From: Cyanophora paradoxa CCMP329
Taxonomy: Eukaryota > Plantae > Glaucophyta
Assembly: GCA_004431415.1 (NCBI GenBank)
Contig: QPMI01000075.1
Location: 1 to 64,000 of the forward strand
DNA length: 64,000 bases
Direction: 5' to 3'
The position numbers were made by a program, and so were the translations under genes. Below are positions 7,331 through 37,870 of this stretch, one piece after another. The notes under the pieces were generated by a model, which did not search any database, was not told the origin of the DNA, and was given only the letters and a program-made list of their open reading frames with translations. How positions within the stretch are numbered: position 1 is the stretch's first letter; the number at the start of each line of letters is the position of its first letter.

Positions 7331-7548
7331 TTTTTTTTTGCAAAAGTGGACGTCGCATTGATACACCACGGCAATGTATCAATGTTCTACGTGACGTGCC
7401 CTTCCGACGGTCATCTATCTAGCCGAGGGTGCTAGCTACGTGCGGCCATGGGTCGCTCAATATGGAGGTTCGCCTGAGTGGGGGAGCCATGGTTTTCGGT
7501 GATAGCCGTAACCAGACCACGCGCCACCCTTGATCAACTCCTCCATCC

Positions 7549-10559: not shown

Positions 10560-11200
10560 TAGCAGAGGCTGAGGGCAATATATTCACGGTATCTGCGGAG
10601 CGCTGCAGCGTCGGCCTGAATGTAGGCTGGGGGCGGGCAGGTCCGACGGGTAAGTGCTGAGGAGCGACTGAGTAGGTCAGCTGTGAGGAGGAGGAGTGGA
10701 CCGCAGGCCGTGCTGTTTGGGGCTGGAGAACGGAGAGGGATGTCTCCGGGCGTAGATAGGTCCATCTGCAGAAGGGAGTGGGGGGAGGGGAGATCCAGAG
10801 TCGCGCTGACTCCAAGTGGCCGCCAGTCTTGTGCAAAGGAGACAAGGTGATCAGGGACGTCGAGGGAGCCATTGTAGAAGTAGAATGAGCGCGTCTGTGG
10901 AAATAGAGCAAGTAGGTGCCAGTGTCCCGGAGGTCTGCTGGAGGAAGGGGTCAGCGAGGGGCTGGTGGGTCTGTTGAATTGGGCAATAGGTGAGGATGGG
11001 ACGAGAACAAGGCGGGCATCGAGGAGTCGTCCGTGGGGATGTATCGGTGTAGGGGGAGGAGGGCAGAACCCCGAGAGTCGAAGTGGGAGGCTGCGCTAGC
11101 AGGGTAGGAGCTGGACGATAGGAAGTGAGCAGGGTGGGGCGAGGCCAGGGCGGCTTCACGGGAAGAGAGCAGGTCAAAAAAGGCTTCCACGAGGGGGAGG
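10560..11200 (-). CDS. Ulp1/C48-like cysteine protease domain (copy 2, catalytic residues apparently present)
   Basis: Across frames: VEAFFDLLSSRE..AHFLSSS.Y; GHWHLLALFPQTRSFYFYNGS; (Q)PNSTACGPLLLLTADLL; RRYREYIALSL. This matches the C48 order HW...D/N...Q..C. Confidence 0.7.
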
Positions 11201-11719
11201 CTGAGGGGGGCATTCGGACGGAGGTGTAAAAGGTCGCCTCGTCGAATGAGTGAGTAACAGTGAGGGTCGGCTCGGGGGGCGGGTGGGAGGGGGGGCTTCG
11301 ACGCGAGGGTTTGCTCCGCGCAATAATCATTGTCTGCGAAGCGGAAGGCATTCCCCAGCCAGCTTTCCTCCGCCAGCGTCAGCGGGCGAGGGAGGGGGAA
11401 TTCAGTCGGGTGGACGGGGGTTCGGCCTGGGGAGGCATGCGCAGCTGGGTGGGCCGCGGGCGCCGGAGGGCGTGGATTGAGGAGTGGGCGTGGAGGGGGT
11501 GGAGGGATGTGGGGAGGGGAGGGGAGTTGGGGGACCGGGGGTGTAAGGGGCGAGGGGAAGGGGGGGACGGAAGGAGGGGGGTGGGGTCTCGTTTGCGTCG
11601 GACCCGGCGCGGGCTTTTGCTGCCGTGTGCTGGAGGGGCGGAGCTGGTGCGTGGGGTCGTGCGCTGCCGTTTTGTTGTGAAAGCCGGGCCGTTGGCCTGG
11701 ATTGTCCCAGGAGGACCTC

Positions 11720-12330
11720 AGGGTCCCGGAGGAGGAGAGCGGCCGCCCAGCGTTCCCGGTAGATGGGGGCGTGGAAGGGAATGGGCGGCCCGTCCTTTGC
11801 CGTACAGGTGGACTTCCTCGCCGCGGCCAATGAACTCAGCGGCGGTCATGACGAAGAGAGCGTCTTCACCGTGTGGACGTGTTTCCAAGCTTGCGTGGGA
11901 AGGTGCTGGTGTCGTATTTCCAGGCGAGCGCGGGAGGGTCGCCGGGGCGGAGGGTCGCCGTCCACCATTTGAGGACCCAGTCTTTAAGAAGGACCGTGAC
12001 GTCGGAGGCGGGTTTGCGGGTGACGTCCAGGATGCGGATTTCGCGGAGGCGGGCTGAGATGATTGCTAGTCGCCAGGGTCGGGACCCAGAGGGTGGTAGG
12101 GGAAGGAGAATATAGTCGTACTCCGTTGGGGAGAAGGGGTGCGGGACGTAGGATCGGTCCGTTAGCGGCCGGCTGCGCGGGTCTTGAGCGAGAGGTGGAG
12201 GGGCTGTGCCCATGAGGATTGAGGTTGCGTGGGAGGACGAAAGAAAGAGCACTTGGGGGTGGTGGGGCGTGCAGCCGGAAGGAGACTTGCCGGTTCTGAA
12301 GAAGTCTGAAGAAAGCGTCAATGGGTTCTG
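11720..12330 (-). CDS. Ulp1/C48-like domain (copy 1, degenerate)
   Basis: YDYILLPL..PWRLAIIS..REIRILD; GEDALFVMTAAEFIGRG; IYRERWAAALL. The C48 fold pattern is present but the catalytic His and Cys are replaced. Confidence 0.55.
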
Positions 12331-18870: not shown

Positions 18871-20585
18871 GTCCGGGGATGTGCTAGGACGGGGATCTGG
18901 AGCACATCACGATGGCGGCGAGCGTCAATACGGTCAGCGGTGTAGAGGGAGGGAGGGTATAGCGTTAGAAGGGACGAGGCCGCCGTGACTAGTGTCGGGG
19001 AGGAGAGGGCAGCGGCGGCGGTAGCGACTGCAGCGGCCGTAGCTGTGCTGGGCTCAATGTCCGCAAGAGCGACGGGGACAAGGGCGGCGAGGAGGGCACA
19101 AAGGAGGAGGCGCGCGGGGAGAGGGGCCGGGCGGCTGAAGGTCCGTTGGACTTGTGGGGCGCGGCGCGCAGGCCGGCCCAGGAGTTCGAGACCGGCGTCA
19201 TGCGGCGCAGCGTCCGTGGCGCCGGCGTCAGCGGGGCCAGCGCTGGCGTGCACGTAGGCACTGGCGCGGAAGCTAACTGCGAGGTACGCGGCCGTGCGCG
19301 TGGCTGGTACGCGTCCGGGTCCGTACGCGGGGCTCGTACGACAGCTCTCGGCGCCATGCAGCGCGGCGTCCGCGGCCGAGCTCGAGGCGCCGGCGTTGGC
19401 GGGGCTAGCACTAGCGTGGGCGCCGGAGCTAGCTGCGAAACCTGCAGTGGTAGTATCGGTGCTATAGCTAGGCGCCGGCACGCGACCGTACGCAGGGTTG
19501 GTGGTACTAGCTATAGTGCAGCTATTAAAGCGCCAATCGCGGATTGCGGAGGTATTGGGCCGCTTCGAATCATTGCCCGACTCACCGGTCGCATGAATAG
19601 AAAAAACTGTTCGCGTTGGAGTTTTTTGACGGCACGCGGCGGGGGTACCGGTAGGCGCAGTTTCGTCCGGGGCCCTGAGACGTTCCGACCGGAAGGGGAG
19701 GCTCCACCGGCCACTGCAGTAGGCGGCGGCGCTGATGGGGCTTCCGTGCTCCAGTCCAGCGATCAGGTTCTGGAGCATGCCGTAGCGCGGTCTAGCGAAC
19801 GTGGTCCAGGAGGTGCTCCAGCTGTAGACACGGCGACTGAGCTGCGAAAGTACTTGCGTGGCCTGCTGGATACCGAGGCGAACAGCGCGGCGTGGAGCGG
19901 CAGCGACAGTAGCATCAGTACGGGGATTGGCCTCTCGCTGCGGGCCTGGAGACGCGCTCGACGGGCGGGGCGTTGCAGGCGGACCTCCGGGACACTTCTG
20001 CACACCGAGGTTTGTTCTAGGGGTCGGACAGTCGGCTCGGGAGGCCGACAGCGTTCTGGGGAGGCCGACAGCGTTCTGCAGGTCGAACGGAGGCGAGACA
20101 GGCGGCGCGATGGGGCCCGGCGGCGGCTTCACTTCAGGTCCAGGTCCGTCAGCACGGGCGCGGCGCCGGGCAGCGGGGCGGCCGATAGCGTCCTGCAGGT
20201 CGCGCGGCGCGGGCGGAGGCGAGACAGGCTGCACGCTGGGGCCCGTCGGCGGCTCCACTTGAGGTCCAGGTCCGTCAGCACGGGCGCGGCGCCGGGCAGT
20301 GCGGCGGCCGACAGCGTCCTGCAGGTCGCGCGGCGCGGACGGAGGCGAGACAGGCGGCGCGCTGGGGCTCGGCGGCGGCTTCTCTTCAGGTACAGGTCCG
20401 TCAGTCCGGGCTCGGCGCGGGGCAGCGGGGCGGCCGACAGCGTCCTGCAGGTCTCGCGGCGCGGGCGGAGGCGAGACAGGCGGCGCGCTGGGGTTCGGCG
20501 GCGGATTCACTTCAGGTCCAGGTCCGTCAGCACGGGCGCGGCGCCGAGAAGTGCGGCGGCCGACAGCGTCCTGCAGGTCGCGCTG
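18852..20585 (-). CDS. Retrotransposon N-terminal region, part 3 (42-aa repeats, low complexity, signal-like LLLCALLAALVPVALA just before APE)
   Basis: ORF 18852..20642. It continues in frame with 35648-35849 and 36772-39527 once the insertions and one TSD copy each are removed. Confidence 0.7.
   Translation of the reverse strand, partial: QRDLQDAVGRRTSRRRARADGPGPEVNPPPNPSAPPVSPPPAPRDLQDAVGRPAAPRRARTDGPVPEEKPPPSPSAPPVSPPSAPRDLQDAVGRRTARRRARADGPGPQVEPPTGPSVQPVSPPPAPRDLQDAIGRPAARRRARADGPGPEVKPPPGPIAPPVSPPFDLQNAVGLPRTLSASRADCPTPRTNLGVQKCPGGPPATPRPSSASPGPQREANPRTDATVAAAPRRAVRLGIQQATQVLSQLSRRVYSWSTSWTTFARPRYGMLQNLIAGLEHGSPISAAAYCSGRWSLPFRSERLRAPDETAPTGTPAACRQKTPTRTVFSIHATGESGNDSKRPNTSAIRDWRFNSCTIASTTNPAYGRVPAPSYSTDTTTAGFAASSGAHASASPANAGASSSAADAALHGAESCRTSPAYGPGRVPATRTAAYLAVSFRASAYVHASAGPADAGATDAAPHDAGLELLGRPARRAPQVQRTFSRPAPLPARLLLCALLAALVPVALADIEPSTATAAAVATAAAALSSPTLVTAASSLLTLYPPSLYTADRIDARRHRDVLQIPVLAHPRTRLMRS
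20040..20585 (-). repeat. 126-bp coding tandem repeat (RDLQDAVGRPAARRRARADGPGPEVKPPPSPSAPPVSPPPAP), left part
   Basis: ctgcaggtc recurs at 20193, 20319, 20445 and 20571 (126-bp period). Confidence 0.95.
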
Positions 20586-23470
20586 TATAACTGCACTTTT
20601 TGACATGTACATTTGACCACTTCTGCCCAAAGTCCTACCCAAACTTTGGGTTTACCCAAACTTTGGGTAAGCCCAAACTTCTGACCGAAATCGGGCTAAA
20701 GTTCTGCCTGAACTTTGGGTTTACCCAAACTTTGGGTAAGCCCAAAGTTTGAGCCTCAACTCTTGGCAGAACTTTGGGCTTGCCCAAACTTTGGTCAAGC
20801 CCAAAGTTTGAGACTCGACTCTGGGCTGAAGTTCGGGCTTGCCCTCAAGCCCGAGCTTTAAAGCCCCAGCTGCAGTTCGACGGTCTAGCTGCACTGCACG
20901 TCGGGAGAGAGCTCGAGGTCGCCGCGACCGAGCCGACGTCGAGCGCCGCGCACTCTACCAAGGCGTGGCTAGCCTGGGCGCTAGCCTAGGCAGCTTGCTA
21001 GCGCGGGGCGTGTCCCCATCGGCTCTGGCGGTCGCCGCGCATCCTCAGTTCAGCTCCGCGCCTTGCAGCCTTGGCGGTCGCAGCACGCAGATATCGATCG
21101 CCTCAGCTGCCGCAAGTGCCCCGTCCCACGCCGTCCCAGTCGGATGCGGTTCCGCGTCCCTCGCTTCGGGCGCTCGCACAGCTCACGACGCGCGCTCGCG
21201 GCGCAGGACCCTGGATCGCCCGCGCGACAGCGCGAGCGTGCGCGAGCATGTGGCCGGCGGTGCGCGCTCGCGGCCCCTGCGGACCGCGTTCCCTTCGCTC
21301 GCTTCCCCTTAGCTCGGGCCTCTCGCAGAAAGCGCTCGTCTTCACCCCCCACGTCTGCGTGGGGGCTCATGGGGGTGAGCTCATCTAGGCTGTATATGTA
21401 CATGTACACACTGAAAGTGAAACTGAAATTCTCTGCCTGCCGCTCCTCTGCATAGCCTAGCGGCGACTACGCAAAACTACGCGTGCGGGCCAGCAAGGGC
21501 AGGGCCCCGGGCGATGCGACTAGCGATGCGTGAAGGCGTGAAGCGATGCGGCCCGCGCGCGCTGTAGGTCATGTGGCACCTCGCCGGGCCCGCTGCGCTT
21601 TGCGCATCGCGGTTAGCGAGCGCTCGAATCGAGGCGGAACCGAACGGGCCGCTGCGCACCTCGGCCAGGAGAGGGAGCAGCACACCGGCTCGAGCTCGCC
21701 CCGCGGCCAGGATTCCCGCGACCGCGACCGCGATGGCGAGGGCGAAGCGCTCGCTGCGCTTGGAGAGTCAATCGAAAGAAAAGAAGCGTGCGCGCCGACA
21801 AACGACCGCACCTGCGCCTGAGCGGCCGAAAGCATAATCTGCAAGGCGCTCGGCAGCCCACGACCGCGCGACCGCGACGGCGAGGGCGAGGGCGAAGAGC
21901 TCGCTGCGCTCGGATCGAAAGAAAAGAAGAATGCGCGACGGCAAACGACCGCACCTGCGCCCGAGCGGCCGCAAGCATGAACTCCGAGGCCGATCCCAGC
22001 AGCCACTGGGCCACACGTCCGGAAAGCGGCACGCGCTGCGCTGCGCACGCCGCCGGCGTTACAACAAGATCGAAGGACGAGCAGCGGAGACAAGAGCGAG
22101 CACCTGGCCTGCGGAAGAAGGCGCCGGGCGAACTGGGCGGTGGTGTTCTGCTCGCGGGGACCAGTCACGCCCGCTCCCTGGCCCGCCAGCGGAATGAGGG
22201 ATTGAATCAAAGGAGAGGAAACGAAAAGCACCTTGCTTAGCCTCCGCAGCCGCCGCCTACGTTCCGCGCGTGCCTGTCAGCGGCAGAACGCCCATTGGCG
22301 ACAGCCGCGGGAGGAATGGACGACAAAGCCAACAAGGAGATCGATAGCGATGCGTTCGCGAGCATTCGCGGCCGCAACCGGGCACCAGCCGCCCTGAAGC
22401 AAGGCTCTGCGTTTGAAATCAGGCGGGCGACAGGCGGCGAGAGGGGCAGAGGATGCAAGAAAGTACCTTCGAGCATCGTTCGCGCCTGAAGCCGACGATG
22501 TTCGCTGCGGCGGCAGCAAGTCCGTTCGACCTGGTTTGAAAGCGGAGTCAGAGACGCGGGCAGCGCTGCGAGACCCCGGAGGAGCGAACGAACCGAGCCG
22601 CTGTGAGAGTGAAGCGCGTCCGCGCGGCAGCCTTCAGTCGAGGCTGCAGCTGCTGGCAGCAAGGCACTTGAAGGCACTTTAAGGCAGCAAGTTTGGGGTA
22701 CACGACTGTTGGGAAAAGCCTTGTGAGGCCCACAGCGGCAGGGCCGCCGCGGCAGCCGCGCCGTAGTATAGCTTTCCGAAGCCGTCTGAAGCGATTGCCA
22801 ACGGCTCTTGCGGCCCTCGCTTGCCCCAGGCGCAGGCGGTGCACGCAGCGCCTCCCGCTGCGGCACCTTCGCGCGTGCTCGCAGCACGCAGCGCACGGCA
22901 GCTACGAGCACGCGAGCTTGTAACCATGGGTCCAGCTCCCCCAGTAGCATCGTCCCTGCGCCGCGCCGATCCACAGCTAGATCGACCGGGCCCGCAACGC
23001 AGCGCTGGGTGACTTCGCCGTGCTGGCCGGGTTCTTTGCGTGGCGTTCAGCTCACTTACATCCGCAGTATCTCTACCAGACATCCCCGCGGTCGATTTGG
23101 AGGGTTGAGGTGCACGCCGGCCGTGGATGCGGTTCTGGTCGCCGGCGGAGCTCTCTCGCATGTTTCGGTGCATAGAGCGTCCCTTTGAGATGCTCACGCA
23201 GTGCCTCTGACTCTGGACTGGCCGAGCGCTGCGTGAGCGCGCGGACCGACGCAACCTCCCGATCGGCGGTCGCCTCGGGTGCGCCTGCCAAGCACAGCAT
23301 TGGGCCAGCGACGCGCGAGCACGTGGCTTACGAGGCCCAGACCGCCGGGACGGGTGAGCCGCCTCGGATCGTCGCAGTTCGGGAGTGCTTCTACTACGTA
23401 TACATTGCCTGGGTGAGCACACAGATGCTATTTGAGCCGGCTGCGTGCGTGCGCGTCGCTGACGGGGCGC
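20586..23470 (+). repeat. Left terminal inverted repeat (~2.9 kb)
   Basis: Reverse complement of 32740-35647. Mirrored ORF translations confirm this (e.g. 22548..22844- equals 33365..33661+). Confidence 0.93.
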
Positions 23471-23499
23471 ATGCTGGACGTGCCGGGCGGCGGCGGGGA

Positions 23500-24730
23500 C
23501 AGCTTGCCGGGCAGGGCGGAGGCGCGGCGGGCGGCGGGCGCAGCTCGCGGGGCGGGACGGAGGTGCGGCGGGCGGCGCCGGGGCTCGCCGGCGCGGGCGG
23601 AGGCGCGGCGGGCGGCGGGCGCGGCTCGCCGGGCGGAGCGGAGGTGCGGCGGGCGGCGCCGGGGCTCGCCGGCGCGGGCGGAGGCGCGGCGGGCGGCGGG
23701 CGCGGCTCGCCGGGCGGAGCGGAGGTGCGGCGGGCGGCGCCGGGGCTCGCCGGGGCGGGGCGGAGGCACGTCGGGCGGCGAGCGCGGCTCGCCGAGCAAG
23801 GCGATCTCAGGAGGCGCGGCGGGCTGCCCGCGCGGCTCGCCGGGCGGGGCGGTCTCAGGAGGCGCGGCGGACGGCGGGTGGCGTACCCCTTGCTGAGGCG
23901 CAGGCAAATACCACCCTCCCTCACCCCTGCCCCGCCCCGCCGGAACCCGCTTCCGCCTCAGCAAGGGGTACGCCACCGGCCGCCCCCGTACCGCCGCCCA
24001 AGCTCAGCCCGGTTGACCTGCTCGCAGGCAAGGCGAAGGCGACGGGCGCGCCAAGGGGACAGCTTGCCGGGCAGGGCGGAGGCGCGGCGGGCGGCGGGCG
24101 CAGCTCGCGGGCGGGACGGAGGTGCGGCGGGCGGCGCCGGGCTCGCCGGCGCGGGGCGGAGGCACGTCGGGTGGCGAGCGCGGCTTGCCGAGCAAGGCGA
24201 TCTCAGGAGGCGCGGCGGGCTGCCCGCGCGGCTCGCCGGGCGGGGCGATCTCAGGAGGCGCGGCGGGCTGCCCGCGCAGCTCGCCGGGCGGGGCGGTCTC
24301 AGGAGGCGCGGCGGGCTGCCCGCGCAGCTCGCCGGCGGGGCGGTCTCAGGAGGCGCGGCGGGCTGCCCGCGCAGCTCGCCGGGCGGGGCGGTCTCAGGAG
24401 GCGCGGCGAGCTGCCCGCGCAGCTCGCCGGGCGGGGCGGTCTCAGGAGGCGCGGCGAGCTGCCCGCGCAGCTCGCCGGGCGGGCGGTCTCAGGAGGCGCG
24501 GCGAGCTGCCCGCGCAGCTCGCCGGGCGGGCGGTCTCAGGAGGCGCGGCGGGCTGCCCGCGCAGCTCGCCGGGCGGGGCGGTCTCAGGAGGCGCGGCGAG
24601 CAGTGGGTGCGGCTCGTCGGGCGAGCGGAGGGGCGGGGCGGACGTGCGGCGGGCGGCGGCGGCGCTCGGTGGGTGGAGGCTCTGCAGGCAACGGCGGCGC
24701 TCGGTGGGCGGGGGGGAGGCTCTGCGGGCG
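23500..24730. repeat. GC-rich minisatellite (~40-bp ggcgcggcgggctgcccgcgcagctcgccgggcggggcggtctcagga-type units)
   Basis: Seen directly; related in inverted orientation to 31805-32600. Confidence 0.85.
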
Positions 24731-24780
24731 GCGGTAGGGAGATAGTTCAATAGCCTTTTTATGAATTTGATGCCAGGAAG

Positions 24781-27700
24781 AGACTCGTGTGCAAAGAATT
24801 GCAAGCTCGCCGCGCCGAGCTTAGGAGCACGAATGAGCTTGCAGGAGCATCAGATTCGGATTCCCCGCCCTCAAATTGGGCGGGGTGCAAATTTGGGGGC
24901 AGTCGCGGCCCCGAACGACGCGACGGAGTGAGGTCGAGGGCGATACTTGAGACTGCAAACTTGCCGCCAAGGGGCCTAGTCGGCGAATATCACCAAGTAA
25001 AACATCTTATCTGACAAGTTAGATCCGGGCGCGGAGACGCCCCCGGGGGTTTATGAAGGTGCTGGATTTGATTCTGAGGTCGCCGGAGGCCCGGGGCGAG
25101 CTCGTAGCGCGCGGCGCATTATTTTGGAGGGCGAGTCGCCATATTTTTGGCGGGCTGTTCAGGACCTTCCCGCGCGGCAGGGCGTGCGAGTAGAAGCCCG
25201 GTAGCCGGTAGTAACGTCGAGGCCCTGTCTAAGACGCTACTGAATGACTCGCATCCGTCGGGAAGCGAGCTAGAGGGGCACGGGCGGACTGGGAATCGGC
25301 TCTCAAAATTAAATTGATCTCGGGAGAGACCCCATAAGGGAGTTGTTCTCCCCCGCAGCTCCGTCCGGGCGACCTAAGCTTCAAGTCAAATACTCTGCAT
25401 GTACAGTTGCGAGCACTGGTATCGTCTACGGGGCTCATAGGTGCCACTTACTCAGTATTTGTTTATGGCGGGTAGAGACTCATGATCATGATCATGTGCA
25501 AAGAACTGCAAGCTCGCCGCGCCGAGCTTAGGAGCACGAATGAGCTTGCAGGAGCATCAGATTCGGATTCCCGCCCTCAAATTGGGCGGGGTGCAAATTT
25601 GGGGGCAGTCGCGGCCCCGAACGACGCGACGGAGTGAGGTCGAGGCGATACTTGAGACTGCAAACTTGCCGCCAAGGGCCTAGTCGGCGAATATCACCAA
25701 GTAAAACATCTTATCTGACAAGTTAGATCCGGGCGCGGAGACGCCCCGGGGTTTATGAAGGTGCTGGATTTGATTCTGAGGTCGCCGGAGGCCCGGGGCG
25801 AGCTCGTAGCGCGCGGCGCATTATTTTGGAGGGCGAGTCGCCATATTTTTGGCGGGCTGTTCAGGACCTTCCCGCGCGGCAGGGCGTGCGAGTAGAAGCC
25901 CGGTAGCCGGTAGTAACGTCGAGGCCCTGTCTAAGACGCTACTGAATGACTCGCATCCGTCGGGAAGCGAGCTAGAGGGGCACGGCGGACTGGGAATCGG
26001 CTCTCAAAATTAAATTGATCTCGGGAGAGACCCCATAAGGGAGTTGTTCTCCCCCGCAGCTCCGTCCGGGCGACCTAAGCTTCAAGTCAAATACTCTGCA
26101 TGTACAGTTGCGAGCACTGGTATCGTCTACGGGGGCTCATAGGTGCCACTTACTCAGTATTTGTTTATGGCGGGTAGAGACTCATGATCATGATCATGTG
26201 CAAAGAACTGCAAGCTCGCCGCGCCGAGCTTAGGAGCACGAATGAGCTTGCAGGAGCATCAGATTCGGATTCCCCGCCCTCAAATTGGGCGGGGTGCAAA
26301 TTTGGGGGCAGTCGCGCCCCGAACGACGCGACGGAGTGAGGTCGAGGGCGATACTTGAGACTGCAAACTTGCCGCCAAGGGCCTAGTCGGCGAATATCAC
26401 CAAGTAAAACATCTTATCTGACAAGTTAGATCCGGGCGCGGAGACGCCCCCGGGGTTTATGAAGGTGCTGGATTTGATTCTGAGGTCGCCGGAGCCCGGG
26501 GCGAGCTCGTAGCGCGCGGCGCATTATTTTGGAGGGCGAGTCGCCATATTTTTGGCGGGCTGTTCAGGACCTTCCCGCGCGGCAGGGCGTGCGAGTAGAA
26601 GCCCGGTAGCCGGTAGTAACGTCGAGGCCCTGTCTAAGACGCTACTGAATGACTCGCATCCGTCGGGAAGCGAGCTAGAGGGGCACGGGCGGACTGGGAA
26701 TCGGCTCTCAAAATTAAATTGATCTCGGGAGAGACCCCATAAGGGAGTTGTTCTCCCCGCAGCTCCGTCCGGGCGACCTAAGCTTCAAGTCAAATACTCT
26801 GCATGTACAGTTGCGAGCACTGGTATCGTCTACGGGGCTCATAGGTGCCACTTACTCAGTATTTGTTTATGGCGGGTAGAGACTCATGATCATGATCATG
26901 TGCAAAGAACTGCAAGCTCGCCGCGCCGAGCTTAGGAGCACGAATGAGCTTGCAGGAGCATCAGATTCGGATTCCCGCCCTCAAATTGGGCGGGGTGCAA
27001 ATTTGGGGGCAGTCGCGGCCCCGAACGACGCGACGGAGTGAGGTCGAGGGCGATACTTGAGACTGCAAACTTGCCGCCAAGGGCCTAGTCGGCGAATATC
27101 ACCAAGTAAAACATCTTATCTGACAAGTTAGATCCGGGCGCGGAGACGCCCCGGGGTTTATGAAGGTGCTGGATTTGATTCTGAGGTCGCCGGAGGCCCG
27201 GGGCGAGCTCGTAGCGCGCGGCGCATTATTTTGGAGGGCGAGTCGCCATATTTTTGGCGGGCTGTTCAGGACCTTCCCGCGCGGCAGGGCGTGCGAGTAG
27301 AAGCCCGGTAGCCGGTAGTAACGTCGAGGCCCTGTCTAAGACGCTACTGAATGACTCGCATCCGTCGGGAAGCGAGCTAGAGGGGCACGGGCGGACTGGA
27401 ATCGGCTCTCAAAATTAAATTGATCTCGGGAGAGACCCATAAGGAGTTGTTCTCCCCGCAGCTCCGTCCGGGCGACCTAAGCTTCAAGTCAAATACTCTG
27501 CATGTACAGTTGCGAGCACTGGTATCGTCTACGGGGCTCATAGGTGCCACTTACTCAGTATTTGTTTATGGCGGGTAGAGACTCATGATCATGATCATGT
27601 GCAAAGAACTGCAAGCTCGCCGCGCCGAGCTTAGGAGCACGAATGAGCTTGCAGGAGCATCAGATTCGGATTCCCGCCCTCAAATTGGGCGGGTGCAAAT

Positions 27701-30700
27701 TTGGGGCAGTCGCGGCCCCGAACGACGCGACGGAGTGAGGTCGAGGGCGATACTTGAGACTGCAAACTTGCCGCCAAGGGGCCTAGTCGGCGAATATCAC
27801 CAAGTAAAACATCTTATCTGACAAGTTAGATCCGGGCGCGGAGACGCCCGGGGGTTTATGAAGGTGCTGGATTTGATTCTGAGGTCGCCGGAGGCCCGGG
27901 GCGAGCTCGTAGCGCGCGGCGCATTATTTTGGAGGGCGAGTCGCCATATTTTTGGCGGGCTGTTCAGGACCTTCCCGCGCGGCAGGGCGTGCGAGTAGAA
28001 GCCCGGTAGCCGGTAGTAACGTCGAGGCCCTGTCTAAGACGCTACTGAATGACTCGCATCCGTCGGGAAGCGAGCTAGAGGGGCACGGGCGGACTGGGAA
28101 TCGGCTCTCAAAATTAAATTGATCTCGGGAGAGACCCCATAAGGGAGTTGTTCTCCCCGCAGCTCCGTCCGGGCGACCTAAGCTTCAAGTCAAATACTCT
28201 GCATGTACAGTTGCGAGCACTGGTATCGTCTACGGGGGCTCATAGGTGCCACTTACTCAGTATTTGTTTATGGCGGGTAGAGACTCATGATCATGATCAT
28301 GTGCAAAGAACTGCAAGCTCGCCGCGCCGAGCTTAGGAGCACGAATGAGCTTGCAGGAGCATCAGATTCGGATTCCCCGCCCTCAAATTGGGCGGGGTGC
28401 AAATTTGGGGGCAGTCGCGGCCCCGAACGACGCGACGGAGTGAGGTCGAGGGCGATACTTGAGACTGCAAACTTGCCGCCAAGGGGCCTAGTCGGCGAAT
28501 ATCACCAAGTAAAACATCTTATCTGACAAGTTAGATCCGGGCGCGGAGACGCCCCCGGGGGTTTATGAAGGTGCTGGATTTGATTCTGAGGTCGCCGGAG
28601 GCCCGGGGCGAGCTCGTAGCGCGCGGCGCATTATTTTGGAGGGCGAGTCGCCATATTTTTGGCGGGCTGTTCAGGACCTTCCCGCGCGGCAGGGCGTGCG
28701 AGTAGAAGCCCGGTAGCCGGTAGTAACGTCGAGGCCCTGTCTAAGACGCTACTGAATGACTCGCATCCGTCGGGAAGCGAGCTAGAGGGGCACGGGCGGA
28801 CTGGGAATCGGCTCTCAAAATTAAATTGATCTCGGGAGAGACCCCATAAGGGAGTTGTTCTCCCCCGCAGCTCCGTCCGGGCGACCTAAGCTTCAAGTCA
28901 AATACTCTGCATGTACAGTTGCGAGCACTGGTATCGTCTACGGGGGCTCATAGGTGCCACTTACTCAGTATTTGTTTATGGCGGGTAGAGACTCATGATC
29001 ATGATCATGTGCAAAGAACTGCAAGCTCGCCGCGCCGAGCTTAGGAGCACGAATGAGCTTGCAGGAGCATCAGATTCGGATTCCCCGCCCTCAAATTGGG
29101 CGGGGTGCAAATTTGGGGGCAGTCGCGGCCCCGAACGACGCGACGGAGTGAGGTCGAGGGCGATACTTGAGACTGCAAACTTGCCGCCAAGGGGCCTAGT
29201 CGGCGAATATCACCAAGTAAAACATCTTATCTGACAAGTTAGATCCGGGCGCGGAGACGCCCCGGGGTTTATGAAGGTGCTGGATTTGATTCTGAGGTCG
29301 CCGGAGGCCCGGGGCGAGCTCGTAGCGCGCGGCGCATTATTTGGAGGGCGAGTCGCCATATTTTTGGCGGGCTGTTCAGGACCTTCCCGCGCGGCAGGGC
29401 GTGCGAGTAGAAGCCCGGTAGCCGGTAGTAACGTCGAGGCCCTGTCTAAGACGCTACTGAATGACTCGCATCCGTCGGGAAGCGAGCTAGAGGGGCACGG
29501 GCGGACTGGAATCGGCTCTCAAAATTGATCTCGGAGAGACCCATAAGGGAGTTGTTCTCCCCGCAGCTCCGTCCGGGCGACCTAAGCTTCAAGTCAAATA
29601 CTCTGCATGTACAGTTGCGAGCACTGGTATCGTCTACGGGGGCTCATAGGTGCCACTTACTCAGTATTTGTTTATGGCGGGTAGAGACTCATGATCATGA
29701 TCATGTGCAAAGAACTGCAAGCTCGCCGCGCCGAGCTTAGGAGCACGAATGAGCTTGCAGGAGCATCAGATTCGGATTCCCCGCCCTCAAATTGGCGGGG
29801 TGCAAATTTGGGGGCAGTCGCGGCCCGAACGACGCGACGGAGTGAGGTCGAGGGCGATACTTGAGACTGCAAACTTGCCGCCAAGGGCCTAGTCGGCGAA
29901 TATCACCAAGTAAAACATCTTATCTGACAAGTTAGATCCGGCGCGGAGACGCCCCGGGGTTTATGAAGGTGCTGGATTTGATTCTGAGGTCGCCGGAGGC
30001 CGGGGCGAGCTCGTAGCGCGCGGCGCATTATTTTGGAGGGCGAGTCGCCATATTTTGGCGGGCTGTTCAGGACCTTCCGCGCGGCAGGGCGTGCGAGTAG
30101 AAGCCCGGTAGCCGGTAGTAACGTCGAGGCCCTGTCTAAGACGCTACTGAATGACTCGCATCCGTCGGAAGCGAGCTAGAGGGCACGGGCGGACTGGGAA
30201 TCGGCTCTCAAAATTAAATTGATCTCGGGAGAGACCCCATAAGGGAGTTGTTCTCCCCGCAGCTCCGTCCGGGCGACCTAAGCTTCAAGTCAAATACTCT
30301 GCATGTACAGTTGCGAGCACTGGTATCGTCTACGGGGCTCATAGGTGCCACTTACTCAGTATTTGTTTATGGCGGGTAGAGACTCATGATCATGATCATG
30401 TGCAAAGAACTGCAAGCTCGCCGCGCCGAGCTTAGGAGCACGAATGAGCTTGCAGGAGCATCAGATTCGGATTCCCCGCCCTCAAATTGGCGGGGTGCAA
30501 ATTTGGGGCAGTCGCGGCCCCGAACGACGCGACGGAGTGAGTCGAGGGCGATACTTGAGACTGCAAACTTGCCGCCAAGGGGCCTAGTCGGCGAATATCA
30601 CAAGTAAAACATCTTATCTGACAAGTTAGATCCGGGCGCGGAGACGCCCCGGGGTTTATGAAGGTGCTGGATTTGATTCTGAGGTCGCCGGAGGCCCGGG

Positions 30701-31630
30701 CGAGCTCGTAGCGCGCGGCGCATTATTTTGGAGGGCGAGTCGCCATATTTTTGGCGGGCTGTTCAGGACCTTCCGCGCGGCAGGGCGTGCGAGTAGAAGC
30801 CCGGTAGCCGGTAGTAACGTCGAGGCCCTGTCTAAGACGCTACTGAATGACTCGCATCCGTCGGGAAGCGAGCTAGAGGGGCACGGGCGGACTGGGAATC
30901 GGCTCTCAAAATTGATCTCGGGAGAGACCCCATAAGGGAGTTGTTCTCCCCCGCAGCTCCGTCCGGGCGACCTAAGCTTCAAGTCAAATACTCTGCATGT
31001 ACAGTTGCGAGCACTGGTATCGTCTACGGGGGCTCATAGGTGCCACTTACTCAGTATTTGTTTATGGCGGGTAGAGACTCATGATCATGATCATGTGCAA
31101 AGAACTGCAAGCTCGCCGCGCCGAGCTTAGGAGCACGAATGAGCTTGCAGGAGCATCAGATTCGGATTCCCGCCCTCAAATTGGGCGGGGTGCAAATTTG
31201 GGGCAGTCGCGGCCCGAACGACGCGACGGAGTGAGGTCGAGGGCGATACTTGAGACTGCAAACTTGCCGCCAAGGGCCTAGTCGGCGAATATCACCAAGT
31301 AAAACATCTTATCTGACAAGTTAGATCCGGGCGCGGAGACGCCCCCGGGGGTTTATGAAGGTGCTGGATTTGATTCTGAGGTCGCCGGAGGCCCGGGGCG
31401 AGCTCGTAGCGCGCGGCGCATTATTTTGGAGGGCGAGTCGCCATATTTTTGGCGGGCTGTTCAGGACCTTCCCGCGCGGCAGGGCGTGCGAGTAGAAGCC
31501 CGGTAGCCGGTAGTAACGTCGAGGCCCTGTCTAAGACGCTACTGAATGACTCGCATCCGTCGGGAAGCGAGCTAGAGGGGCACGGGCGGACTGGGAATCG
31601 GCTCTCAAAATTGATCTCGGGAGAGACCCC
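24781..31630. repeat. Tandem array of ~9.75 near-identical ~700-707 bp units
   Basis: gcaaagaa(c/t)tgcaagctcg recurs at ~24791, 25498, 26200, 26902, 27601, 28303, 29010, 29707, 30402 and 31097. Copies differ mostly in homopolymer length. Confidence 0.97.
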
Positions 31631-31804
31631 AATGCCCGGGAGCCCTGAGCCCTGAGCTTCTCGTAAAATAATCTAGATATACACAAAGGGGCGCTGATAT
31701 CATCTCCAGGCGCTCCCATGTGCCAGTAACTCAGTATCCTTTTGATGGCAGACAGAGACTTCTGTGCAAAGAAGTGCGAAGTCACCGCGCTGAGGATAAA
31801 TGGC

Positions 31805-32600
31805 CCGCGCCCCGCGAGCCGCCGCACCTCCGCCCCGCCCCGCGAGCCGCGCGGCCGCTCGCCGCGCCTCCGCCCCGCCCCGCGAGCCGCGCGGCCGTCC
31901 GCCGCGCCTCTGCCCCGCCCGTCGAGCCGCGTGGCCGCCCGCCGCACCTCCACCCCGCCCTGCGAGCTGCGCGGCCGCCCGCCGCGCCTCTGCATCGCCC
32001 CGCGAGCCGCGCGGCCGCCCGCCGCGCCTCCGCCCCGCCCCGCGAGCCGCGCGGCCGCCCGCCTCACCTTCGCCCCGCCCCGCGAGCTGCGCGGCCGCTC
32101 GCCGCGCCTCCGCCCCGCCCGTCGAGCCGCGCGGCCGCTCGCCGCGCCTCTGTCCCGCCCGCGAGCTGCGCGGCCGCCCGCCCGCCTCTGCATCGCCCGG
32201 CGAGCCGCGCGGCCGCCCGCCGCGCCTCCGCATCGCCCGGCGAGCCGCCGCCGCCGCCCGCCGCGCCTCCGCCCCGCCCGCGAGCCGCCGCCGCCACCGC
32301 CGCGCCTCCGCCCCGCCCGCGAGCCGCCGCGGCCGCCCGACTCACCTTCGCCCCGCCCAGTGAGCCGCGCGGGCGCCCGCCGCGCCTCCGCCCCGCCCCG
32401 CGAGCCGCGCAGCCGCCCGCCGCGCCTCCGCCCGCCCGTCGAGCCGCGCAGCCGCCCGCCGCGCCTCCGTCCCGCCTGAGAGCTGCGCGGCCGCCCGCCG
32501 CGCCTCTGCATCGCCCGGCGAGCCGCCGCCGCCGCCCGCCGCGCCTCCGTCCCGCCCCGCGAGCCGCACCGCCGAGCGCCGCGCCTCCGCCCGCCTCAGC
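31805..32600. repeat. GC-rich ~40-bp minisatellite (cgagccgcgcggccgcccgccgcgcctccgccccgccc)
   Basis: Seen directly; inverted counterpart of 23500-24730. Confidence 0.85.
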
Positions 32601-32739
32601 TCCGCTCTGCAACACGCAGCACTGCAGGAAGCGCCTCCGCCCTATCCTGGAAGTCACGCGGCCGCCTGCCGCGCCTCCAGACCCGCCGCACACCAGCCCC
32701 TGGGCTTCATGCGGCATCTTCCGGTATCCTGTGTTACCG

Positions 32740-35647
32740 GCGCGCCCCGTCAGCGACGCGTACGCGTCCCCTCAGCGACGCGCACGGGCCCAGCCGGCTC
32801 ACCTAGGCAGTGTAGAAGAATGTCTCCCAAACTGCGACGATCCGAGGCGGCTCACCCATCCCAGCGGTCTGGGCCTCTTCAGCCACATGCTCGCGCGTCG
32901 TTGGCCCAATGCTGTGCTTGGCAGGCGCACCCGAGGCGACCGCCGATCGGGAGGTTGCGTCGGTCCGCGCGCTCACGCAGCGCTCGGCCAGTCCAGAGTC
33001 AGAGGCACTGCGTGAGCATCTCAAAGGGACGCTCTATGCACCGAAACATGCGAGAGAGCTCCGCCGGCGACCAGAACCGCATCCACGGCCGGCGTGCACC
33101 TCAACCCTCCAAATCGACCGCGGGGATGTCTGGTAGAGATACTGCGGATGTAAGTGAGCTGAACGCCACGCAAAGAACCCGGCCAGCACGGCGAAGTCAC
33201 CCAGCGCTGCGTTGCGGGCCCGGTCGATCTAGCTGTGGATCGGCGCGGCGCAGGGACGATGCTACTGGGGGAGCTGGACCCATGGTTACAAGCTCGCGTG
33301 CTCGTAGCTGCCGTGCGCTGCGTGCTGCGAGCACGCGCGAAGGTGCCGCAGCGGGAGGCGCTGCGTGCACCGCCTGCGCCTGGGGCAAGCGAGGGCCGCA
33401 AGAGCCGTTGGCAATCGCTTCAGACGGCTTCGGAAAGCTATACTACGGCGCGGCTGCCGCGGCGGCCCTGCCGCTGTGGGCCTCACAAGGCTTTTCCCAA
33501 CAGTCGTGTACCCCAAACTTGCTGCCTTAAAGTGCCTTCAAGTGCCTTGCTGCCAGCAGCTGCAGCCTCGACTGAAGGCTGCCGCGCGGACGCGCTTCAC
33601 TCTCACAGCGGCTCGGTTCGTTCGCTCCTCCGGGGTCTCGCAGCGCTGCCCGCGTCTCTGACTCCGCTTTTCAAACCAGGTCGAACGGACTTGCTGCCGC
33701 CGCAGCGAACATCGTCGGCTTCAGGCGCGAACGATGCTCGAAGGTACTTTCTTGCATCCTCTGCCCCTCTCGCCGCCTGTCGCCCGCCTGATTTCAAACG
33801 CAGAGCCTTGCTTCAGGGCGGCTGGTGCCCGGTTGCGGCCGCGAATGCTCGCGAACGCATCGCTATCGATCTCCTTGTTGGCTTTGTCGTCCATTCCTCC
33901 CGCGGCTGTCGCCAATGGGCGTTCTGCCGCTGACAGGCACGCGCGGAACGTAGGCGGCGGCTGCGGAGGCTAAGCAAGGTGCTTTTCGTTTCCTCTCCTT
34001 TGATTCAATCCCTCATTCCGCTGGCGGGCCAGGGAGCGGGCGTGACTGGTCCCCGCGAGCAGAACACCACCGCCCAGTTCGCCCGGCGCCTTCTTCCGCA
34101 GGCCAGGTGCTCGCTCTTGTCTCCGCTGCTCGTCCTTCGATCTTGTTGTAACGCCGGCGGCGTGCGCAGCGCAGCGCGTGCCGCTTTCCGGACGTGTGGC
34201 CCAGTGGCTGCTGGGATCGGCCTCGGAGTTCATGCTTGCGGCCGCTCGGGCGCAGGTGCGGTCGTTTGCCGTCGCGCATTCTTCTTTTCTTTCGATTGAC
34301 GCTCCAACTGCAGCGAGCGCTTCGCCCTCGCCATCGCCGCCGCGGTCGCGGGAATCCTAGCCGCGGGGCGAGCTCGAGCCAGTCAGCTGCTCCCTCTCCT
34401 AGCCGAGGTGCACAGCGTCCCGTCCGGTTCCGCTTGATGCGAGCGCTCGCTAACCGCGATGCGCACAGCGCAGCGGGCCCGGCGAGGTGCCGCATGACCT
34501 GCAGCGCGCGGGGGCAGCATCGCTTCGCGCCTTCCCTTCCCACGTGAATTCCTAGTCGCGTCGCCCGGGCCGGGCCCTGTGCTTGCTGGGCCGCATGCGC
34601 AGTTGTGTGACAGCCGCCGGTAGGCCGTGTAGCAGAGCCGCAGGCAGAGAATATCAATTTCATTTACAGGGAACCGCTAGCTACGTATGCATGCGCGGGC
34701 GAACTTCGGGCTTGCCCAAACTTTGGTACTGCGCAGCCTGGCGAGAGCAAGTGCACGTGTGAGCGTCGGAGGCGGCCGCTTGAGCGCCAGAGCTTGATTC
34801 CACCCGGCGGCGCGGATCTGCGTAGAGGGCGCATCTCGTCCGCCCGCAGCCGGCGCGGCCAGCTCGTTCGGAGGCTGACCCTTGACGTGGGGGGTGAAGA
34901 CGAGCGCTTTCTGCGAGAGGCCCGAGCTAAGGGGAAGCGAGCTAAGGGAACGCGGTCCGCAGGGGCCGCGAGCGCGCACCGCCGGCCACATGCTCGCGCA
35001 CGCTCGCGCTGTCGCGCGGGCGATCCAGGGTCCTGCGCCGCGAGCGCGCGTCGTGAGCTGTGCGAGCGCCCGAAGCGAGGGACGCGGAACCGCATCCGAC
35101 TGGGACGGCGTGGGACGGGGCACTTGCGGCAGCTGAGGCGATCGATATCTGCGTGCTGCGACCGCCAAGGCTGCAAGGCGCGGAGCTGAACTGAGGATGC
35201 GCGGCCACCGCCAGAGCCGATGGGGACACGCCCCGCGCTAGCAAGCTGCCTAGGCTAGCGCCCAGGCTAGCCACGCCTTGGTAGAGTGCGCGGCGCTCGA
35301 CGTCGGCTCGGTCGCGGCGACCTCGAGCTCTCTCCCGACGCGCAGTGCAGCTAGACCGCCGAACTGCAGCTGGGGCTTTAAAGCTCGGGCTTGAGGGCAA
35401 GCCCGAACTTCAGCCCAGAGTCGAGTCTCAAACTTTGGGCTTGACCAAAGTTTGGGCAAGCCAAAAGTTCAGGCAGAACTTTTGCCCGATTTCGGTCAGA
35501 ACTTTGGGTTTACCCAAAGTTTGGGCAAGCCCAAAGTTCTGCCAAGAGTTGAGGCTCAAACTTTGGGCTTACCCAAAGTTTGGGTAAACCCAAAGTTTGG
35601 GTAGGACTTTGGGCAGAAGTGGTCAAATGTCAAAAAGTGCAGTTATA
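32740..35647 (-). repeat. Right terminal inverted repeat (~2.9 kb)
   Basis: Reverse complement of 20586-23470, with internal indels and a diverged patch. Confidence 0.93.
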
Positions 35648-35849
35648 GCGCTGCGCGGGCGGAGGCGAGGCGCGGGGCGCGCTGGGGCTCGGCGGCGGCT
35701 TCACTTGAGGTCCAGGTCCGTCAGCACGGGCGCGGTGCCGGGCAGCGGGGCGACCGACAGTGTTCTGCAGGTCGCGCGGCGCGGGCGGAGGCGAGGCGCG
35801 GGGCGCGCTGGGGCTCGGCGGCGGCTTCACTTGAGGTCCAGGTCCGTCA

Positions 35850-36771
35850 ATTTGCGATCACTGAATTCGCACACACCGAGACAGTACAGCTAGTGATGTA
35901 ACTGGGGTGTCTGACTGTGTCATGTCGAAAGGTAACAATTTAGGCTAAGGCGCAATGCTAGCCATCAGAAACCGGACAGGGTGGAGCTATTGTACTGAGG
36001 AAAGCGACCTACACACACCTAGCAACGCTACTTACTCCTACCTAGAGAGCCAAATCAGGACAGAGCAACCATAACCCCCCCTCAAGACGTGGGAGCCTAC
36101 AGGAGAGAACCCAGGTATAAGCGAGGATATGGGGTTGGAGCCGCGCAGCCTGAACTATAGCCCTCCATCTGATAGGGAAGATGCGCACTAAGGGAGCAAA
36201 GCCAGCTAACCCCAGGGAGGGCCGGAAACCGGAGCCCGTGAGAGCCCGGGTGAAAACCGGCGGGCGCACAGCATCGCCGGCCGAAGCCGGCGACCTGTGC
36301 TCCTCGGCCGAGAGATACCTCCTCCAGCTGGCGCGCGTGCGCACGCGGAATCCGCTGCAGCGGGGTTGGGAGGCCCGGGCCGCCCGAGTGCTCAGAAGCA
36401 CGTCGCCTCGCCAGGAATCCAAGCATCTGTGCGGCCACGACGCCCACGGCCGCGACGCGGGCGTGCACTCACACGACCGGCGATCATCTGCGCGGGCGCA
36501 GCGCAGGTCGCCGACCCCATAGCCGCGGGCGGCCGATCGCTACCGCAGAGAAGTGCTTGGGCTGAACGAGAGAGCAGCTGCTAAAGCCGCCGCTGGTGTC
36601 CGCTGGAGTGGCTCGCCGAACCGACCCACGGAGCGGATTCCTAACGGACGCGCGGCTAACCAGCTAAAGGAGGGATGGAGGCGCCACCGAGGCGATTCGC
36701 GGCAGCCGGAGAGGCGCCCAGCGGGCAGGAGCCCGCCACCTACTTTCTCTCCAGGTCGGGGTACGCGAATC
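35850..36771 (-). mobile_element. 922-bp insertion with 15-bp TSD (probable 5'-truncated or non-autonomous retroelement of a second family)
   Basis: TSD ggtccaggtccgtca at 35835-35849 and 36772-36786. Its left ~130 bp is homologous to 47669-47800. Orientation is inferred. Confidence 0.8.
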
Positions 36772-37870
36772 GGTCCAGGTCCGTCAGCACGGGCGCGGCG
36801 CCGGGCAGCGGGGAGGCCGACAGCGTCCTGCAGGTCGCGCGGCGCGGGTGGAGGCGAGACAGGCGCGCTGGGGCTCGGCGGCGGCTCCACTTGAGGTCCA
36901 GGTCCGTCAGCACGGGCGCGGCGCCGGGCAGCGGGGCGGCCGACAGCGTTCTGCAGGTCGCGCTGCGCGGGCGGAGGCGAGACAGGCGGCGCGCTGGGGC
37001 TCGGCGGCGGCTTCACTTGAGGGCCAGGTCCGTCAGTCCGGGCGCGGTGCCGGGCAGCGGGGCGGCCGACAGCGTCCTGCAGGTCTCGCGGCGCGAACGG
37101 AGGCGAGACAGGCGGCGCGCTGGGGCTCGGCGGCGGCTTCACTTGAGGGCCAGGTCCGACAGCACGGGCGCGGCGCCAAGCAGCGGGGCGGCCGACAGCG
37201 TCCTGCAGGTCGCGCGGCGCGGGCGGAGGCGAGGCGCGGGGCGCGCTGGGGCTCGGCGGAAGCTTCAATTGAGGTCCAGGTCCGTCAGCACGGGCGCGGT
37301 GCCGGGCAGCGGGGTGACCGACAGTGTTCTGCAGGTCGCGCGGCGCGAGCGGAGGCGAGACAGGCGGCGCGCTGGGGCTCGGCGGCGGCTTCACTTGAGG
37401 TCCAGGTCCGACAGCACGGGCGCGGCGCCGGGCAGCGGGGCGGCCGACAGCGTCCTGCAGGTCTCGCGGCGCGGGCGGGGGCGAGGCGCGGGGCGCGCTG
37501 GGGCTCGGTGGCGGATTCACTTCAGGTCCAGGTCCGTCAGTCCGGGGGCGGTGCTGGGCAGCGGGGCGGCCGACAGCGTTCTGCAGGTCTCGCGGCGCGG
37601 GCGGAGGCGAGGCGCGGGGCGCGCTGGGGCTCGGCGGCGGCTTCACTTGAGGGCCAGGTCCGACAGCACGGGCGCGGCGCCAAGCAGCGGGGCGGCCGAC
37701 AGCGTCCTGCAGGTCGCGCAGCGCGGGCGGGGGCGAGGCGCGGGGCGCGCTGGGGCTCGGCGGCGGCTTCACTTGAGGTCCAGGTCCGTCAGCACGGGCG
37801 CGGTGCCGGGCAGCGGAGGGGCCGACAGCGTCTTGCAGGTCGCGTGGCGCGGGAGGGGGCGAGGCGCGCG
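36772..37870 (-). repeat. 126-bp coding tandem repeat, right part (~8.7 copies; ~15 in total with 20040-20585 and 35648-35849)
   Basis: Same 42-aa unit in ORF 36540..39527. Confidence 0.95.

Follow-up and report, generated by a model that had tools for sequence, protein, structure and literature searches.

A 15-kb element with long inverted ends and no coding signal occupies positions 20586-35647 of the 64-kb window (the whole stretch of DNA that was analysed), where it is inserted precisely within a LINE retrotransposon. It is confirmed as a genuine insertion, flanked by a target-site duplication (TSD), and the initial annotation was right to describe it as a very large non-autonomous element. 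What moved it? The explanation favoured here, tentatively and at a little short of an even chance, is that it is a non-autonomous foldback-type cut-and-paste DNA element mobilised by a trans-acting, integrase-like DDE enzyme, most likely of the IS3EU/GingerRoot type. What is new is one further foldback-type non-autonomous DNA transposon, the general kind being already known. A single clean, datable element would here unite a long-arm foldback transposon, a transcribed fragment captured at the DNA level and a homogeneous satellite array, still young, growing in the loop. Its parts and those of its host, with the analysis that defines each in brackets, are as follows.

20088-20585, minus strand: left part of the host target, an in-frame 126-bp (42-aa) tandem repeat of the LINE ORF (repeat, ORF and excision analysis)
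20580-20585, no strand: left TSD copy, GCGCTG (126-bp register restored on excision)
20586-20830, plus strand: left terminus (TATAACTGCAC...) and subterminal zone, GC about 48% (motif and end comparison)
20586-23397, plus strand: left arm (terminal inverted repeat, TIR), 2.8 kb (pairs with 35647-32812)
21355-21914, no strand: variable block of the left arm, 0.56 kb, about 85% identical to the right arm with indels (arm alignment)
21640-23385, no strand: inner arm, an unspliced piece of a high-copy family that is transcribed and spliced, with its mirror image in the right arm (contig depth and GT..AG joints)
23489-24662, plus strand: left GC-rich minisatellites, with a 41/81-bp unit at 23489-23876 and a 48-bp unit at 24060-24662 (tandem-repeat analysis)
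24785-31794, plus strand: central array of units of about 700 bp (unit alignment)
31805-32595, minus strand: right GC-rich minisatellite, with 19 copies at 31819-32592 of a 40-bp unit that matches the left 41-bp unit in reverse complement (repeat and arm alignment)
32812-35647, minus strand: right arm (TIR), 2.8 kb, its outer end reading ...GTGCAGTTATA (pairs with 20586-23397)
35648-35653, no strand: right TSD copy, GCGCTG (126-bp register restored on excision)
35648-37887, minus strand: right part of the host target, in which the 126-bp repeat continues (repeat and excision analysis)

Boundaries, target site and host

The element ends in TATAAC...GTTATA, that is 5'-TA...TA-3'. Exact inverted termini had been claimed, and they are borne out: within the 64-kb window TATAACTGCAC is found only at 20586-20596 on the plus strand and at 35637-35647 on the minus strand, with up to one mismatch allowed and 0.15 occurrences expected. 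The left and right ends agree over their first 17 nt and, beyond a 6-bp indel, are identical again. On either flank stands a perfect duplication of GCGCTG, five of whose six bases are G or C. In-silico excision of the element together with one GCGCTG returns the 126-bp host repeat to its exact register, which only the removal of 6 bp achieves, and the same excision lengthens the minus-strand host ORF over the junction from 596 to 645 aa. The perfect 6-bp TSD of the initial annotation is thereby upheld.

Six copies of the palindrome CCCAAA(C/G)TTTGG lie in the left subterminal zone (20586-20830), arranged in 17/59-bp modules, and 12 of the 13 such sites in the window (0.38 expected) fall within about 230 bp of the ends of the element. 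Clustered in this way, the palindromes are likely to be binding sites of the mobilising enzyme.

The host was correctly recognised as a LINE-like retroelement. The 126-bp repeat region lies upstream of an APE endonuclease on the minus strand, with the corresponding domain (Pfam PF03372) just downstream of the repeat, and the next ORF resembles a reverse transcriptase (Atlas features). A second insertion, at 35850-36771, breaks the right part of the repeat. A Dualen-type identity for this LINE is not supported, the protease of the published Dualen being Josephin-like. On present evidence the element is a lone insertion knocking out one LINE copy, and its biological impact is therefore local.

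Arms, inner fragment and central array

The inverted arms measure about 4 kb each when the minisatellites are included. Two blocks are near-identical between them, 20775-21355 with four mismatches and 21914-23299 with no mismatch and one gap, and between these lies the variable block, in which the right arm shows a 128-bp indel and the left arm an additional 143-bp tandem unit. Is the palindrome a product of assembly? Arms that differ by indels and a diverged block, around an array that runs in one direction, do not make a mirror image, and with the exact TSD this leads to rejection of an assembly-foldback artefact. In two independent strains there are contigs over sequence found in the left arm alone, and one contig of 998 nt starts in the shared block and continues into a stretch that does not resemble the left arm and is presumably that of the right arm. 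Among the matches listed, no short-read contig over the left junction and arm crosses 20586. A composite transposon, in which two elements flank a cargo, was rejected as well, as the arms have no inner termini and TATAACTGCAC stands only outermost (up to one mismatch).

The search for genes gave a uniform answer. Ten ORFs of the arms and minisatellites have no credible match in Pfam, a large protein search with the terminal-arm ORF 20839-21312 and the inner-arm ORF 22237-22974 returned no homologues at E<=0.001, and 3-base (codon) periodicity is absent from the element. Rfam at its gathering threshold finds no family anywhere in the window, and neither the element nor the rest of the 64-kb window holds a transposase of any kind. 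The statement that the element holds no recognisable gene stands in these respects and needs qualifying in another, because each arm carries an unspliced piece of a transcribed, spliced, multi-copy family. The inner 1.75 kb of each arm matches spliced transcripts of this repeated family, and summed contig depth reaches 3000-9000 over 21640-23385, against about 120 over 20777-21355. In the left arm the introns lie at 21904-21954, 22041-22103 and 22407-22466 on the minus strand and at 23009-23067 and 23110-23201 on the plus strand; their canonical GT..AG ends are confirmed, the spliced joints being seen solely in runs X15 and X17. Exons deduced from the RNA contigs and translated singly give no convincing reading frame. 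Farther out, over 20890-21258, two runs that are evidently RNA contain exact-match contigs at low depth. A transcript through the element might, as the initial annotation proposed, form kilobase-scale dsRNA.

Inside the arms, the initial annotation saw a symmetric order of TIR, GC minisatellite, array, minisatellite and TIR. The order is as described, with arms of 2.8 kb; the left and right minisatellites differ in make-up, so the symmetry is approximate. The central array comprises nine full and two partial units of 693-708 bp in a single orientation, with identities of 98.0-99.7% except for the last partial unit (82%). It begins and ends at the same unit phase, which fits amplification in place, possibly after insertion. 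Summed short-read contig depth over the array differs between strains X1 and X8, which hints at copy-number variation.

Has the element carried this array from place to place? Mobilisation of a tandem-repeat cargo had been proposed. Over 20777-21355 the contigs sum to a depth of about 120, while the lowest junction contigs reach about 77 (about 1.6-fold, in two strains, contig depth not being copy number), which suggests that the terminal kilobase is present about twice per genome, as the two arms of one element. Since the depth fits two arms only, both a multi-copy family and satellite mobilisation are unproven, and the shared unit phase at the array edges agrees with growth of the array in place. 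A second copy of the element was found neither in the 64-kb window, nor in viral or metagenome contigs, nor among proteins.

Candidate enzymes

How might such an element have been built and inserted? In the favoured explanation, a transposase of the IS3EU/GingerRoot type, supplied in trans, would recognise both ends of the element, binding the TATAAC... termini together with the subterminal clusters of CCCAAAGTTTGGG palindromes, and would insert it at a staggered cut of 6 bp (GCGCTG) within the part of the LINE ORF that holds the 42-aa tandem repeat. Each arm would consist of a family-specific end of about 1 kb, a captured 1.75-kb unspliced genomic fragment of an abundant transcribed family, and the GC minisatellite. 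Unequal exchange would have amplified the central unit of about 700 bp in situ, giving a ten-unit array.

The choice of enzyme follows from the literature on terminal signatures. Kojima (2023, PMC10045372) describes TA..TA termini in every IS3EU family and, as a rule, a TSD of 6 bp; for GingerRoot, Cerbin et al. (2019, PMC6839031) give TA..TA ends in 72 of 77 elements, GC-rich TSDs of 6 bp and frequent carriage of gene fragments. The initial annotation had cited TAY..RTA ends with a 6-bp TSD as the reported IS3EU signature, and the literature confirms TA..TA ends with 6 bp (PMC10045372, PMC6839031). The present element shares with these groups the TA..TA ends, the 6-bp TSD, the GC-rich target, the presence of TIRs and the carriage of host gene fragments, here one containing introns (PMC6839031, PMC10045372), and its size falls inside the search range reported for them, 4-13 kb to 30 kb. 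It differs in its TIRs, which at 2.8 kb are far longer than the 100-150 bp of GingerRoot (PMC6839031) or the >30 bp of fungal IS3EU, and in its ends, where TATAA..TTATA departs from the fungal motif TAYGG..CCRTA. It also differs in being apparently single-copy, in having a central satellite array, and in that no integrase-related DDE transposase or autonomous partner is seen in the window. Membership of IS3EU, as read from the end signature, is putative: the termini and TSD length fit, no transposase or second copy accompanies them, and the rve integrases of Polinton-like viruses give TSDs of equal length with kilobase-scale TIRs (PMC12220804). If the termini were linked to an IS3EU/GingerRoot transposase, this little-studied superfamily would extend to a GC-rich unicellular host and to kilobase-scale TIRs.

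Could a virus have supplied the enzyme instead? The element may be tied to a Polinton-like virus or Polinton, as its non-coding hitchhiker or as a defective, copy-back derivative, inserted by the viral rve integrase and with arms formed by template switching during protein-primed replication, an origin considered unlikely. The 6-bp TSD and long TIRs agree with it, as Polinton-like viruses with an rve integrase typically have 6-bp TSDs and TIRs of hundreds to thousands of bp, and these viruses and Polintons/Mavericks together span TIRs of 0.1 to several kb and sizes of 14-40 kb (PMC12220804); the terminal 300 bp, at about 48% GC, also lie below the rest of the element. Polinton termini, however, are AG..TC (PMC6839031) and not TA..TA, and the element ORFs contain no domain or homologue of Polinton-type genes (pPolB or other replicase, capsid, rve/tyrosine integrase), nor is there an ATPase gene. 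The arms, with 66-70% GC and a fragment, introns included, of a spliced family of host type, are host-like and not virus-like, and exact-word scans of viral contigs with the terminus, the subterminal module and an inner-arm word gave no match. Two metagenome contigs, L001 and L002, with an exact-word match to the 21-nt terminus were attributed to chance, being otherwise dissimilar to the window, AT-richer and furnished with CATGTAACTGGAT-like iterons.

A broader version of the viral origin appears improbable to a higher degree. It would place the element in a recurrent class of large, gene-less palindromic elements in this genome, parasites of the rve integrase that resident Polinton-like viruses encode; such elements would be defective or satellite virus genomes, with viral sequence swapped for host fragments and satellite DNA, and would seed arrays at new loci. 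Were the termini linked to the integrase of a Polinton-like virus, non-coding parasites of endogenous viruses would be demonstrated.

The enzyme might also belong to another, possibly undescribed DDE superfamily (for instance a 6-bp-TSD hAT lineage, Dada or Ginger2), or the element might be an orphan whose autonomous partner has been lost; the chance of this is judged to be small, on a par with that of the viral derivative. TSD length and terminal dinucleotides are weak classifiers, and the element is apparently single-copy, as judged from contig depth. Against it, TA..TA ends with a 6-bp TSD are specifically the IS3EU/GingerRoot pattern, and Ginger2 ends in TG..CA. The ends of hAT elements follow YARNG, which TATAA does not fit, and Dada elements target small-RNA genes, unlike this one. 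Least probable of all, and very doubtful, is that no transposon was involved. On this view the structure would be either a palindrome of extrachromosomal or rearranged origin, taken up at a staggered double-strand break, or a chimera assembled from foldback long reads. Inverted ends come with any palindromic DNA, so that TIRs alone are no independent evidence of a transposase, and one copy only is documented. Against this, an exact 6-bp duplication with a restored host repeat register is a hallmark of transposase or integrase action, the clustered subterminal palindromes resemble binding sites, both flanks continue the same LINE, and foldback artefacts are exact mirror images at contig ends, unlike the indels, roughly 12% diverged block and one-directional centre seen here.

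Foldback and fragment-carrying relatives

Whatever its enzyme, the element has the build of a foldback transposon, with long inverted arms, internal tandem repeats (17/59-bp and 40-48-bp), no coding signal and a TSD. Drosophila FB and Galileo are further foldback elements that carry tandem repeats. A close parallel is Tetris of Drosophila virilis, which is likewise non-autonomous, has very long inverted arms with tandem repeats and a modular, rearranged structure, is presumed to be mobilised in trans, and has tandem repeats that expand into satellite-like arrays (PMC4079207). In Tetris the satellite-forming repeats sit in the TIRs and as separate arrays (PMC4079207), whereas the unit of about 700 bp here is seen within the element, in the central loop and in one direction; the TSD and end signature moreover point to another enzyme family, and the host is a GC-rich, protist-like genome in place of an insect. 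The element agrees with current models of satellite DNA seeded by transposons.

The inner arm recalls Pack-MULEs, which are also non-autonomous DNA transposons whose ends enclose a piece of a transcribed locus in unspliced form. The TSD differs (6 bp here, 8-10 bp in Pack-MULEs), as does the arrangement, the fragment being duplicated in inverted orientation within the arms. Its source is also of a different kind, a family of high copy number that is perhaps a repeat in its own right.

Insertion boundaries and the host LINE

The foldback element, 15 kb of DNA at 20586-35647 with 2.8-kb inverted ends (its arms), finishes on both sides in the 11-nt word TATAACTGCAC, which has two exact occurrences in the window against 0.15 expected, a count unchanged when one mismatch is allowed. 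A word scan of the window places them as follows.

20586-20596, plus strand: left terminus TATAACTGCAC
35637-35647, minus strand: right terminus TATAACTGCAC

The two ends agree exactly for 17 nt, where a 6-bp indel sets them apart, and beyond it the agreement resumes and takes in the first subterminal repeats. Directly abutting the element on both outer sides is the hexamer GCGCTG. But is this a true target-site duplication (TSD)? Because both flanks are part of a 126-bp tandem repeat, the duplication was checked by repeat register, removing 20586-35647 and one GCGCTG in silico. After removal, successive units are exactly 126 bp and the minus-strand open frame across the junction gains length, with 645 codons in place of 596. 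Repetitive flanks thus do not explain the boundaries or the 6-bp duplication, both of which are exact, and the TSD-flanked insertion described in the initial annotation stands, with a perfect GCGCTG duplication.

What was the target? The nearest downstream ORF on the minus strand encodes an APE-type endonuclease domain (PF03372), the one after it has Atlas features like those of reverse transcriptases, and upstream of the two lies the 126-bp repeat, read in frame as 42 aa per unit. These features identify the target as a LINE-like retroelement, in line with the initial annotation. Its ORF holds at least 14 in-frame repeat units upstream of the APE domain, with ~89% mutual identity.

20088-20585, 35648-35849 and 36772-37887: 126-bp repeat of the LINE ORF

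A summed contig depth of 7000-12000 over this repeat shows that either it or the LINE is abundant genome-wide. At a distance of 200 bp from the 15-kb element, a second insertion of 922 bp (35850-36771) occupies the same array, bounded by the 15-bp direct repeat GGTCCAGGTCCGTCA (35835-35849 and 36772-36786). This insertion has no terminal inverted repeat, is lower in GC than its surroundings and breaks the LINE ORF.

Arms, tandem repeats and coding capacity

20586-23397 paired with 35647-32812, inverted: arms
23489-23876: left minisatellite, 41/81-bp unit
24060-24662: left minisatellite, 48-bp unit
24785-31794, single orientation: central array, 9 full and 2 partial units of 693-708 bp
31819-32592: right minisatellite, 40-bp unit x19

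In global alignment the arms are a mosaic of near-identical and diverged blocks: 4 mismatches separate them over 20775-21355 and none over 21914-23299, with the intervening block (21355-21914) only ~85% alike, with a 128-bp indel in the right arm and an additional 143-bp tandem unit in the left. The first ~230 bp at each end form a subterminal zone of lowered GC, where the palindromic motif CCCAAA(C/G)TTTGG occurs six times per zone, in 17- and 59-bp modules (13 sites in the window against 0.38 expected).

The GC-rich minisatellites inside the arms have mirror orientation left and right. Over the 40/41-bp minisatellite (23489-23876, 31819-32592) summed contig depth reaches ~21000, the highest across the stretch covered, and this repeat is therefore genome-wide and not specific to the element. 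Units of the central array are 98.0-99.7% identical to the reference unit, the last partial one 82%. The array starts and ends at nearly equal unit phase, with a short overlapping similar stretch at both edges, the trace expected if unequal exchange amplified the unit in place. The window contains no further copy of the arms or of the ~700-bp unit. The proposal that the element mobilises a satellite is unproven: one insertion alone is on record, and growth of the array may have followed it. Across 24915-25645, RNA contigs match the ~700-bp unit at only ~93-94%, and DNA contigs of strain X1 hold two unit variants of similar depth, which means that other strains have variants of the array or additional arrays.

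The element is non-coding. None of ten ORFs from arms and minisatellites has a credible hit in Pfam, two arm ORFs found no homologue in a large protein search, and codon-position GC along the element shows no periodicity (control: the host F-box ORF, spread 0.30). The rest of the window holds no transposase either, and Rfam has no match anywhere in the window. Host-type genes in the window (53986-56840 and 59861-60793) comprise plus-strand ORFs with leucine-rich repeats and the minus-strand F-box ORF, whose GC3 codon bias is strong (0.88).

Copy number and the spliced inner-arm family

Logan contigs from four sequencing runs of this organism were aligned over 20086-25900: X1 and X8 are DNA runs of two strains, X15 and X17 evidently RNA. 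Over 20777-21355 both DNA runs give one 998-nt contig of depth ~120. Junction contigs of lowest depth stand at ~77, from which a contig two-copy over 579 nt and single-copy over 419 nt should average ~122; given this fit we infer that the terminal kilobase is present only as this element's two arms, depth itself not being a copy number. The initial annotation had counted single-copy termini against a transposon. By contig depth the termini do appear single-copy and evidence for a family is gone, but the transposition reading survives because it rests on the exact TSD.

The inner arms behave differently: numerous short contigs, with a summed depth of 3000-9000 and a 2-8% difference from the window, cover 21640-23385. 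Joints skipping 51-92 nt occur in X15 and X17 and in neither DNA run. Inspection of the window sequence at the ends of the skipped pieces gave:

21904-21954, 22041-22103 and 22407-22466, minus strand: introns, canonical GT..AG ends
23009-23067 and 23110-23201, plus strand: introns, canonical GT..AG ends

A further joint (23279-23342) is non-canonical in this copy. Since GT..AG joints are confined to them, X15 and X17 are RNA, and the inner arms are therefore an unspliced piece of a family that is abundant, transcribed and spliced. The earlier statement that there is no recognisable gene thus holds for coding capacity but overlooked this fragment. The family is 90-98% similar to the inner arms (21640-23385, mirrored at 32824-34570) and diverges in its continuation beyond 23385, near the inner end of the arms. 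Both of its strands are transcribed, in directions leading away from around position 22850, and its introns are very short, most with a CGCAG end. Its exons, translated one at a time, gave no convincing protein frame. Low-depth exact-match RNA contigs also lie over 20890-21258, and low-copy arm sequence may be transcribed.

What moved the element

The element is of an already known kind, a foldback-type transposon. Functionally it is like Tetris of Drosophila virilis, whose tandem repeats grow into satellites (PMC4079207), and it resembles Pack-type elements in carrying gene fragments. Which enzyme moved it? In complete IS3EU families the termini are always TA..TA and the TSD is usually 6 bp long (PMC10045372). 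In GingerRoot, which is the same lineage, 72 of 77 elements have TA..TA, the 6-bp TSDs are GC-rich, terminal inverted repeats (TIRs) measure 100-150 bp in elements of 3.9-12.9 kb, and gene fragments are frequently carried (PMC6839031). The element shares the ends, TSD, target composition and fragment carriage, whereas its TIRs are ~20x longer than those of GingerRoot. Mobilisation of IS3EU/GingerRoot type, of which the initial annotation named the IS3EU signature, is our tentative choice, at a little under an even chance, the defining feature of this type being its transposase.

The main rival is hitchhiking on the rve integrase of a Polinton-like virus or Polinton. This integrase type also yields 6-bp TSDs, with TIRs up to several kb (PMC12220804), but Polinton termini are reported as AG..TC (PMC6839031), the element is without any viral gene remnant, and its arms are host-like in GC and contain introns. 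The viral route is rated rather unlikely. Movement by another or an orphan superfamily, as opposed to IS3EU/GingerRoot, is likewise improbable. That the element is no transposon, or an assembly artefact, is very doubtful. An assembly foldback is rejected on the arm indels and the diverged block, the one-direction centre, one LINE in both flanks and the perfect TSD. A composite of two elements is rejected on the absence of inner termini in the arms.

Exact-word scans of viral contigs with the terminus, the subterminal module and an inner-arm word gave no match. The 21-nt terminus does match two metagenome contigs, L001 and L002, which are unrelated to the element and share it by chance. In both stretches (L001:357-520, L002:562-720) the match adjoins arrayed iterons resembling CATGTAACTGGAT that precede a small ORF, probably in a bacterial or phage regulatory region.
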